The notes beneath the pieces were generated by a model. It was not told the origin of the DNA and made no database searches. It saw nothing but the letters and a program-made list of their open reading frames with translations. The position numbers and the translations under genes were made by a program. A DNA stretch of 64,000 nt from Macrostomum lignano (taxonomy: Eukaryota). Location: positions 2,542,001-2,606,000 of the forward strand of contig NIVC01000001.1 of NCBI GenBank assembly GCA_002269645.1, written 5' to 3'. This document shows, in pieces, positions 34,001 through 37,000 of this stretch. Numbering within the stretch: position 1 is the first letter of the stretch; every line of letters starts with the position of its first letter.

Positions 34001-37000
34001 TTGGCTAGAATGATGCAGCACTGTTACTTATTAGTTTTATTAGTATTATTAGTTTATAAAGGGACAAGAAAAATGGTAAAGAAATAAATGAGAGCATCTG
34101 GACTGGAAAATCTGGGGTCCATAGACTTTTTTCATATAGGGAATTCACTAAAACTGAGAAAGGAGACAACGGGGAGAGGGGAGGGTGAGCGAGGAAAGGG
34201 GAAGAGAGTGACTAAGAGAGAGTGTGAGTGATTGAGTGAGAGTGAGAGGAGAGAGTGAGAGTGAGAGTGAGGGAGAGAGGGTGAGGGCGAGGTAGTGAGA
34301 GAGGTAGTGAGAGGTAGTGAGAAGAAGATGGAGAGAATCTGCAGGAGACGACGAGCCTGCACCATCATCAGAGGTCCTGAGCCTCATTACCTGAGCCTAT
34401 TAATGCTCAGGAAAAACACATGAAGCCAGTTGAGGCATGAGGAAAGCGCGGAAGCGGTGTGCAATGGGCCTAGATTAGCTAGAGGTAAGGTTGCACTCAA
34501 GACAGACAGCCTGCTTGTAGTTAATAATTGAATAAATAGCAAAGCGGATAGGCTGGCCAAAAGCAGGTGCAAAATAACATTATTTTGAGACAGACTTGAG
34601 CAACGGATTACTTGGGAGTTCCCTTACTACCGATGTGGATCTCCACTGCCCCCCCTCACAGCACGCTGATAGATTGCAGCGCAGACGGGTTGGAACGGTC
34701 ACGCCGGGGTGGCTTCAGCCTCCCTCTGTCTGCCAACCTCCCAGGCCTCCCCAGCCTCCCAGCCTCCCCAGCCTCCTCCTCTTCGTAAGAGAGAGAGAGA
34801 GAGAGAGAGAGAGAGAGAGAGAGAGAGAGAGAGAGAGAGAGAGACGAGGGCTGGGCTGGAAAGGCGGGCAGGGCTGGTCGGGTCTCGCAGTGTGCAGCGG
34901 ATGCAGTGGGAGTTGGGGCGAACCTCGGATTACAGCACCAATGGGACAAGCCGCGGAGAGCAGACTATGAGAGGAGACGAGACGAGAGGAGAAATCTTAG
35001 GAGAAGCCGACGGGTAAAAATAGAAGAAGAAGAAAAACGACAGAGAAAAATGTTTCCTCGCTAAACGAGAGGAAAGTGGAACAGATTTTACTCAAAACTC
35101 AAAATTACCCAACGCAGAAATAATGGTTAAAACAGCAGTTCTGACTTTGCTTCTTCTAGCAGCAAATGCAGCCGCTGCGGCAGAAGCAGACAGGGTGCCA
35201 ATCTACGCGATAGAATTCGACTGCAGCAGAGCCGACGCTCCGTGCATTTCAGTGCCCTCGGCGCCGAAACGATTCGAAGCCTCGGTGCGCTACGATCCCG
35301 ACTTGAGGTCGGCCAGCATCGACCTGAACTGGCTGGCGCCCGACACCCTGCGCGGCTCCCGCATCGAGGAATACCGCCTACTCTACCGGGCCGTCGGGCC
35401 GCCCGACCTTGTCAGCTCGAGGACCTACACGGAGGTGCCGTTAAGCCACGGCCGAACCTCGTGGACCCTGCCACCCAATAAGGTGCTATTCGGAGCCGTG
35501 TACAACTTCAGTCTGTCGGCTAAGAATAACGAAGGCTACGGAGATGTCATCAGTTGTCAGGCCACCGTTAGGGAGGCTCGTGAGTGCCAGAATGATTGAT
35601 TGACATGAGCTGGGTTTGGCAGTAATATATATTCGGTTTAGTGCTCTCCATCATCTTACTGAGGGATCACGGGATGCAGATGACATCCCACTGAAGGATG
35701 GAATGCAGGTGAACATCCCACTGAATGATCGGGGGATGGAGGTGACATCCCACTGAATGATCGGGGGATGGAGGTGACATCCCACCGAATGATTGGGGGA
35801 TTCAGGTGACATCCCACCGAATGATCGGGGGATGGAGGTGACATCCCACCGAATGATCGGGGGATGCAGGTGACATTCCACCGAATGATCGGGGGATGCA
35901 GGTGACATTCCACCGAATGATCGGGGGATGCAGGTGACATTCCACCGAATGATCGGGGGATGCAGGTGACATTCCACCGAATGATCGGGGATTCAGGTGA
36001 CATCCCACTGAAGGATCGGGGAGTGCAGGTGACATCCCACTGAATGATCAGGGGATGCAGTTGACATCCCACTGAAGGATCGGGGAGTGCAGGTGACATC
36101 CCACTGAATGATCAGGGGATGCAGTTGACATCCCACTGAAGGATTGGGGAGTGCAGGTGACATCCCACTGAATGATCAGGGGATGCAGTTGACATCCCAC
36201 TGAATGATCAGGGGATGCAGTTGACATCCCACTGAATGATTAGGGGATGCAGTTGACATCCCACTGAATGATTAGGGGATGCAGTTGACATCCCATTGAA
36301 TGATGGGGGAAGATAGTGAGAGAAGAACCGCCCCTTGAAAGCTTCGCAGCTGCCAATGAAAGCCGAACCCACCGTCATTTCCGAGCAGCCCCATCGATGA
36401 AGCCGGAGTCATTCTCGGTGAACACCAAGTCGGACACTTCAGTAGAAGTTTTCGCTTTGAAGCCGATCTTAACGGGTCGGAACGGGCAGATCACCAACAC
36501 GGAGGTCGCCTATTGGCCCAAAAACGCCATAGACGGTTACGGCTCGAAGAACTTCAGCGTTGAAAACTCTAGCGCCGTCATCCGGCACCTGAACCCGAGC
36601 AGGGAGTACCTGTTCAAGGTGCGGGCCTGGAACTCGGCGGGACCGGGGCCCTGGTCCGATGTCATGCCGGTGAGTGAACTGATTTTGATTGGTCGTTTGA
36701 TTGATCGATTGATTGATTGATTGGTAGGTTGATTGATTGATAGGTTGATTGATTGGTAGATTGATTGATTGATAGGTTGATTGACTGGTAGGTTGATTGA
36801 TTGATTGGTAGGTTGATTGATTGACTGGTAGGTTGATTGATTGATTGGTAGGTTGATTGATTGACTGGTAGGTTGATTGATTGATTGATTGAGCCGTCAG
36901 TCAGTCAGTCATTTACAGCAATGAGCAGTGGGCAACTGACTGACACGGGAGGTGCGAGCTCTCTTTCGCACAAGCGCCGGAGTGCAAAAGCACTTATGGG

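Follow-up and report, generated by a model that had tools for sequence, protein, structure and literature searches.

The stretch of DNA analyzed here, referred to below as the window, comprises 64,000 nucleotides of the Macrostomum lignano contig NIVC01000001.1 (2,542,001-2,606,000, forward strand) and contains the locus BOX15_Mlig026250g1 (g1), a gene for a LAR-type receptor protein tyrosine phosphatase (RPTP). Over 59,953 bases the window shows 100% identity to this GenBank contig (assembly GCA_002269645.1). At g1 the GenBank annotation has a long isoform only (P0006, 2088 amino acids), the first exon of which lies upstream of the window. We propose that an ATG at positions 35123-35125, within intron 11 of the long form, is probably the start codon of a second, genuine and N-terminally truncated isoform of this receptor. 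The proposal is carried by sequence features, by splice junctions and by a GenBank model that was derived from the transcriptome and has the identical architecture at a sister copy of the locus.

The LAR-type gene and a probable start codon in intron 11

As delineated from stop-to-stop open reading frames (ORFs) joined by GT/AG boundaries of matching phase, the gene lies on the plus strand, as do all of the features described below, and spans about 6.7 kb to 49.95 kb of the window. Within it are coding regions for three Ig domains, several FN3 domains, a single transmembrane segment and a pair of phosphatase domains. In P0006 Pfam recognizes I-set/Ig_3 three times, fn3 seven times and Y_phosphatase twice (Y_phosphatase E = 1e-170), and the protein has the layout of LAR-type (type IIa) enzymes, with three Ig domains and then multiple FN3 domains, followed by one transmembrane segment and the tandem phosphatase domains D1 and D2. 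A protein search puts the cytoplasmic part at 73% identity with fish PTPRS. Using the GenBank splice choices, P0006 is rebuilt exactly from exons of the window (2063 of the 2063 residues encoded therein), which verifies the junctions 31480 to 35253 and 35579 to 36389.

The exon of interest is the FN3 exon 35253-35579, which is common to both isoforms (P0006 junctions; Pfam fn3). In the long isoform it is internal: the preceding FN3 exon (31154-31480) ends at a phase-1 donor, 31480, and joins 35253, the position that follows the acceptor AG at 35251-35252. In the short isoform the same exon forms the 3′ part of a composite first coding exon. Downstream of it, the other exons for the short ectodomain (36389-36669, 37942-38585 and 38926-39364; P0006 junctions and Pfam) are followed, according to the P0006 reconstruction, by the transmembrane exon (40736-40986), a juxtamembrane cytoplasmic exon (43595-43965), the D1 exons (45267-45787 and 47584-47931) and the D2 exons, stop codon included (48602-49287 and 49749-49953), both phosphatase domains being Pfam Y_phosphatase matches.

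The preliminary description of this DNA had an ATG at 35123, with A at -3 and G at +4, open a leader that reads in frame through the long-isoform acceptor, and this proved correct base for base (A at 35120, G at 35126). The frame is closed upstream by a TAG at 35021-35023 and is open from 35024, 35123 being the sole in-frame ATG upstream of the exon, and translation of the 43-residue leader runs without a stop through the acceptor into the VPSAPKRF of the FN3 exon. The start codon and the predicted signal-peptide coding part occupy 35123-35182 (20 residues), and an isoform-specific N-terminal extension of 23 residues with two cysteines occupies 35183-35252, which is intronic in the long isoform. 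A gene model started at this ATG with our own splice choices gives 1397 amino acids, the length that had been predicted, and the GenBank splice choices give 1400.

The leader consists of an n-region, MVK(T), a 10-residue h-region, AVLTLLLL(AA), with a mean Kyte-Doolittle value of 3.04, and a c-region, NAAAAA, in which the AxA rule, as a heuristic only, fits after residues 16-20. Heuristically, then, it has the charged n-region, the h-region of 8-15 residues and the small residues at -3 and -1 of a Sec-type signal peptide. Over its whole length the short product is hydrophobic in just two places, at residues 1 to about 22 and in the transmembrane segment (about 657-690), and this is the topology needed by a type I receptor. 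How often such a pattern arises by chance was judged with a crude n/h/c filter applied to ATG-initiated ORFs of at least 43 codons within the window. Of 382 such ORFs 12 (3%) pass, roughly half of these within tandem repeats; the signal peptide of the long isoform passes and so does the leader, and among the non-repeat passes the 35123 ORF has the best h-region. An in-frame upstream ATG is present at 5 of the 20 internal exons, and only the one at the 35253 exon is signal-peptide-like. A 3% pass rate and five such exons would yield about 0.15 cases per gene by chance. For a signal peptide at 35123 the sequence alone is thus suggestive rather than decisive.

A short model at a sister copy and features of the three copies

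Independent evidence comes from the sister copy g3. A first protein search with the leader plus the FN3 exon gave no match; the database was searched through cluster representatives, and the representative concerned (P0001) is without the N-terminus. A search with the short product returns a 99% identical M. lignano protein. The short form itself was found by listing the members of the 90% protein cluster, which include PAA52253.1 (UniProt A0A267DSI9; BOX15_Mlig026250g3, NIVC01003276.1), an unnamed hypothetical protein of 1399 amino acids with the same leader. Its coding sequence (CDS) begins at L001:10001 of the g3 contig segment, a position that aligns exactly with 35123 of the window in a copy that is about 90-98% identical to g1. 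PAA52253.1 and the g1 short product share architecture and start, with two differences in the 43-residue leader and lengths of 1399 and 1400 amino acids, respectively. Upstream of this start, collinearity between the g3 locus and the window extends over at least 10 kb, and the preceding FN3 exons are still there; g3 is thus a full gene copy with an internal start of which only the short product is annotated.

The GenBank models of this assembly were built from RNA-seq (StringTie/TACO) and a de novo transcriptome rather than ab initio; ORFs were called by TransDecoder, and transcripts were cut wherever experiments had mapped a spliced-leader or poly(A) site (PMC5730564). Hence the predicted short isoform has already been deposited as a transcriptome-derived but unnamed hypothetical protein. 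No mention of Mlig026250, of this protein or of a short LAR isoform in flatworms turned up in the papers and supplements searched. The preliminary description had proposed a second start in intron 11 with its own signal peptide, leading to an Ig-less receptor of about 1400 residues and made by extending an internal exon into its intron rather than by adding a separate exon. PAA52253.1, a model made independently of that description, supports both points in that it starts at the orthologous ATG.

The account of the domains that are lost needs amendment. Pfam finds fn3 three times and no Ig domain in the short form (P0007), so the loss of Ig1-3 stands; the loss of FN3-1 to 5 does not, as relative to the annotated long form four FN3 domains are lost and not five, because the "FN3-4" exon (29373-29693) is skipped in every annotated model. 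This exon (321 nt, Pfam fn3 E = 4.7e-10) is intact and its phase fits its neighbors, and P0006, P0008, P0009 and P0011 all join ...TSDF straight to the next FN3 domain. Its ORF is intact in g3 too, with 8 of 107 residues changed, and it may be either a cassette exon or a decaying one.

Several further features of the gene and its surroundings deserve mention. In-phase acceptor pairs 9 nt apart occur at 7300/7309 and 45267/45276; GenBank takes the upstream member of each (adding PPA and ALT, respectively), and since P0012 uses 45276 the second pair may be truly alternative. The juxtamembrane exon encodes an uninterrupted (Q)11 shortly before a conserved 13-residue motif, which to our knowledge is unusual for LAR proteins. 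In g5 a run of C within an FN3 exon has lost one nucleotide (L002 ~9485, corresponding to window ~37993), which shifts the frame and results in a truncated GenBank product of 973 amino acids; the deletion could be a real pseudogenizing change or a homopolymer assembly error. The introns are full of long tandem arrays with periods of 2-60 nt (for example 1-6600, 24400-26560, 32760-33406, 35671-36310, 41000-43550, 44570-45240 and 46700-47440), the copy number of which varies among the sister copies; these arrays make up most of the length difference between g1, g3 and g5 and are also the source of many long spurious ORFs. Downstream of the LAR gene lies a gene at 53443-57973 (plus strand) for a protein of 859 amino acids with a C-terminal kinesin motor domain (Pfam Kinesin, Microtub_bd), and a kinesin-domain gene likewise comes next after the LAR gene at g3 and g5.

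Formation of the 5′ end and alternative readings

We propose that the short mRNA would have a composite first coding exon made of a short 5′ untranslated region (UTR), 130 nt belonging to the intron of the long isoform, and FN3 exon 35253-35579. Translation of these 130 nt would yield a cleavable signal peptide (about 16-20 residues) followed by a mature N-terminal extension (about 23 residues, two of them cysteines). The product would be a type I membrane protein of about 1400 amino acids in which only the FN3 region next to the membrane, the transmembrane segment and the two phosphatase domains are retained, Ig1-3 and the N-terminal FN3 domains being absent. We infer that this protein is made and its leader cleaved.

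A candidate intronic promoter and/or 5′ UTR block extends over 34561-35122. Between g1 and g3 it shows 1.7-3.4% substitutions, near the level of the exons, and apart from microsatellite length a single 6-nt indel. Among the other intron regions compared, parts b and c differ by 5-9% (with a 519-nt indel in c), intron 12 differs by 15% and part a by 1.5%, and because part a is equally conserved the conservation of the block is weak support for a promoter. The (GA)n tract that had been reported about 280 bp further up is there, some 280 nt upstream of the ATG, as an (AG)28.5 microsatellite at 34788-34844 (TRF), which in g3 and g5 has lengths reduced by 35 nt and 15 nt, respectively, and is preceded at 34716-34776 by the CT-rich repeats CCAGCCTCCC (TRF); a promoter role for this microsatellite is speculation. 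A pattern scan also finds a TATA-like element, TAAAAATA, at 35015-35022, 108 nt upstream of the ATG and identical in g1, g3 and g5. An out-of-frame upstream ORF of four codons, MFPR* (35050-35064), is conserved in the three copies and falls in the 5′ UTR if transcription begins upstream of 35050.

One alternative, which we consider unlikely, accepts the short mRNA as real and has its 5′ end made by spliced-leader (SL) trans-splicing inside intron 11 of the long pre-mRNA, at 35117 in g1 and g5 or at some other AG, with no need for a separate promoter. SL trans-splicing affects about 30-39% of M. lignano genes and transcripts are cut at SL sites by the annotation pipeline, and a CAG does stand 5 nt ahead of the ATG in g1 and g5. 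This is the cgcag (35113-35117) that the preliminary description had taken for an acceptor. The motif is present as stated, but a role as acceptor is not borne out: g3, the very copy with the annotated short form, has cgccg, its AG having become CG at L001 9994 (window 35116), and the site at 35112-35117 reads ACGCAG, which does not fit YTNCAG, the trans-splice acceptor motif of M. lignano (PMC8629364). A pattern scan finds no YTNCAG less than 187 nt upstream, and the closest such sites have upstream ATGs behind them; the other AGs in the 120 nt that precede the ATG are in purine-rich sequence. The SL, moreover, is 35 nt long and ends in ATG (PMC8629364), and joined at 35118 it would, judging from its sequence, generate ATG-AAA-TAA in overlap with the start codon at 35123. 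We also considered, and rejected, SL splicing at 35252, the acceptor of the long isoform, since the terminal ATG of the SL would be out of frame with the exon. An intronic promoter is the favored, if provisional, source of the 5′ end. A reading of the trans-splicing model in which one transcription unit would give rise to full-length and Ig-less LAR through a choice between cis- and trans-splicing, with a signal peptide recently recruited from the intron, is in our estimate quite improbable.

Also improbable, in our view, is the main rival reading, that the short form results from artefact and chance combined. According to this explanation the g3 protein reflects an assembly that was broken upstream of the FN3 exon and ran into unspliced intron 11, where TransDecoder took the first in-frame ATG; the resemblance to a signal peptide would be a coincidence, and only the long isoform would exist in vivo. 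A number of observations weigh against a genuine short isoform and must be set beside the chance expectation of about 0.15 cases per gene. Over 35141-35159 the hydrophobic core coincides with a CTGAC that resembles a branch point and with a pyrimidine tract; this tract ends in AG at 35159, a cryptic in-phase acceptor, and sequence of this kind gives a Leu-rich peptide on translation for trivial reasons. The G+C content at third codon positions (GC3) of the leader is 0.44 and thus intron-like (intron G+C 0.45), compared to 0.79 in the exons of the gene and 0.81 in the signal-peptide exon of the long isoform, and no exon window has a codon log-likelihood as low. The leader is identical in g5 and g1, and g3 differs from it by T4A and A37T without indels, the ORF being intact in both sister copies; however, at a divergence of about 1.5-3% (pS ~0.03) an intact leader ORF is expected by chance. 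Both changes between g1 and g3 are nonsynonymous, so that the proportion of nonsynonymous differences (pN) is 0.021 in the leader and 0.003 in the rest of the CDS, where that of synonymous differences (pS) is 0.029. The comparison shows no constraint between the copies at the amino acid level, and sister-copy conservation was rejected as a test of constraint because the copies are too alike and both leader changes are nonsynonymous. Truncated CDS calls do occur in the annotation, the g5 CDS being an example, and the upstream exons of g3 carry no annotation, as would follow from a broken assembly among near-identical, multi-mapping copies. At g1 the short form is without annotation, and neither the g1 short product of 1400 amino acids nor the ORF of the unspliced sequence is in the protein collection.

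On the other hand, the artefact would require that at least 130 nt of intron be contiguous with an otherwise fully spliced CDS of 4.2 kb. By coincidence, too, the h-region with the highest score among the non-repeat ORFs of the window, an n-region with a lysine, a c-region rich in AxA and a favorable Kozak context would all have to be located at the very point where they are required in a type I receptor. Other phyla, in addition, have short LAR isoforms (PMC4418752). The codon log-likelihood of the leader, while below that of the exon windows, is in the top 8% of stop-free intron windows; a codon usage between the intron and exon distributions argues that the leader is young and neither for nor against its use. 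An exhaustive HMMER search of 1.84 billion representatives with the 152-residue product of the composite exon gave only generic FN3 matches (about 30% identity) that begin near the FN3 boundary (residue ~40-45); none covers residues 1 to about 25, and no leader homologue was found. Given its intron-like codon usage and the lack of a homologue in this search, the leader looks evolutionarily young, as though recruited from intron sequence and not an ancient exon.

That 35123-35252 instead extends an exon of the long isoform through an alternative 3′ splice site, adding 45 or 31 residues between FN3 domains, is hardly credible: exon starts at 35118, 35160 and 35253 all fit the phase-1 donor 31480 and meet no stop, and 35159 has a good pyrimidine tract and the CTGAC branch-like site, but no annotated model uses 35117 or 35159, P0006, P0008, P0009 and P0011 all join TTLGL to VPSAPKRF, and a 16-residue hydrophobic insert within an ectodomain is implausible.

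Counterparts of the proposed short receptor and its meaning

Composite ("hybrid") first exons are internal exons that double as first exons by means of an intronic start just upstream. Exon 35253-35579 would be of this kind, being internal in the long mRNA and extended at its 5′ end by at least 130 nt as a first coding exon. It is unlike generic composite first exons in that the extension provides the predicted signal peptide that a truncated type I receptor needs.

The precedent invoked in the preliminary description, C. elegans PTP-3B, is indeed a short, Ig-less LAR isoform: the ptp-3 transcripts have independent promoters, and PTP-3B has five FN3 and two phosphatase domains (PMC4418752). 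A short form of human PTPRF/LAR (UniProt H0Y4H1), known to us here from this citation only, has the same architecture (PMC4418752). The flatworm form resembles PTP-3B in starting internally within the same gene, with its own start codon and an n/h/c leader, in being without Ig and N-terminal FN3 domains, and in retaining the FN3 domains closest to the membrane, the transmembrane segment and the tandem phosphatases, and it resembles H0Y4H1 in its FN3-only ectodomain and two phosphatase domains. It is unlike PTP-3B in that, rather than five FN3 domains, it keeps the last four FN3-like units, of which Pfam detects three. An origin independent of PTP-3B is likely, because neither the break point nor the leader of the flatworm form has detectable homology elsewhere. 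The short isoform is probably real and ordinary in kind, of the same sort as PTP-3B and short PTPRF, with a sequence that is already public.

By analogy with PTP-3B, the short isoform may act independently of ligands that bind the Ig domains, and from what is established for LAR in vertebrates and flies it would be expected to be blind to proteoglycans and Ig-type ligands. In vertebrate LAR-family proteins proteoglycans are bound by a KKGKK cluster in a loop of Ig1. At the corresponding place (6790-6830) the flatworm gene encodes a 10-residue stretch, and to judge by this loop proteoglycan binding may not be conserved even in the long isoform.

If the short isoform is real, the LAR locus of a free-living flatworm has the same two-receptor logic, full-length and Ig-less, as that of C. 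elegans (PTP-3A/PTP-3B) and apparently of vertebrates. The differing break point and the leader without homologues would suggest that LAR receptors with FN3 domains only were invented independently several times, or else that their first exons turn over. The locus would also represent a case in which a truncated type I receptor gained the signal peptide it needs from intron sequence adjacent to an exon. For genome annotation, a second product would be due at g1, and as M. lignano is tractable for transgenesis, the roughly 2 kb upstream of 35123 are directly testable as an isoform-specific promoter.

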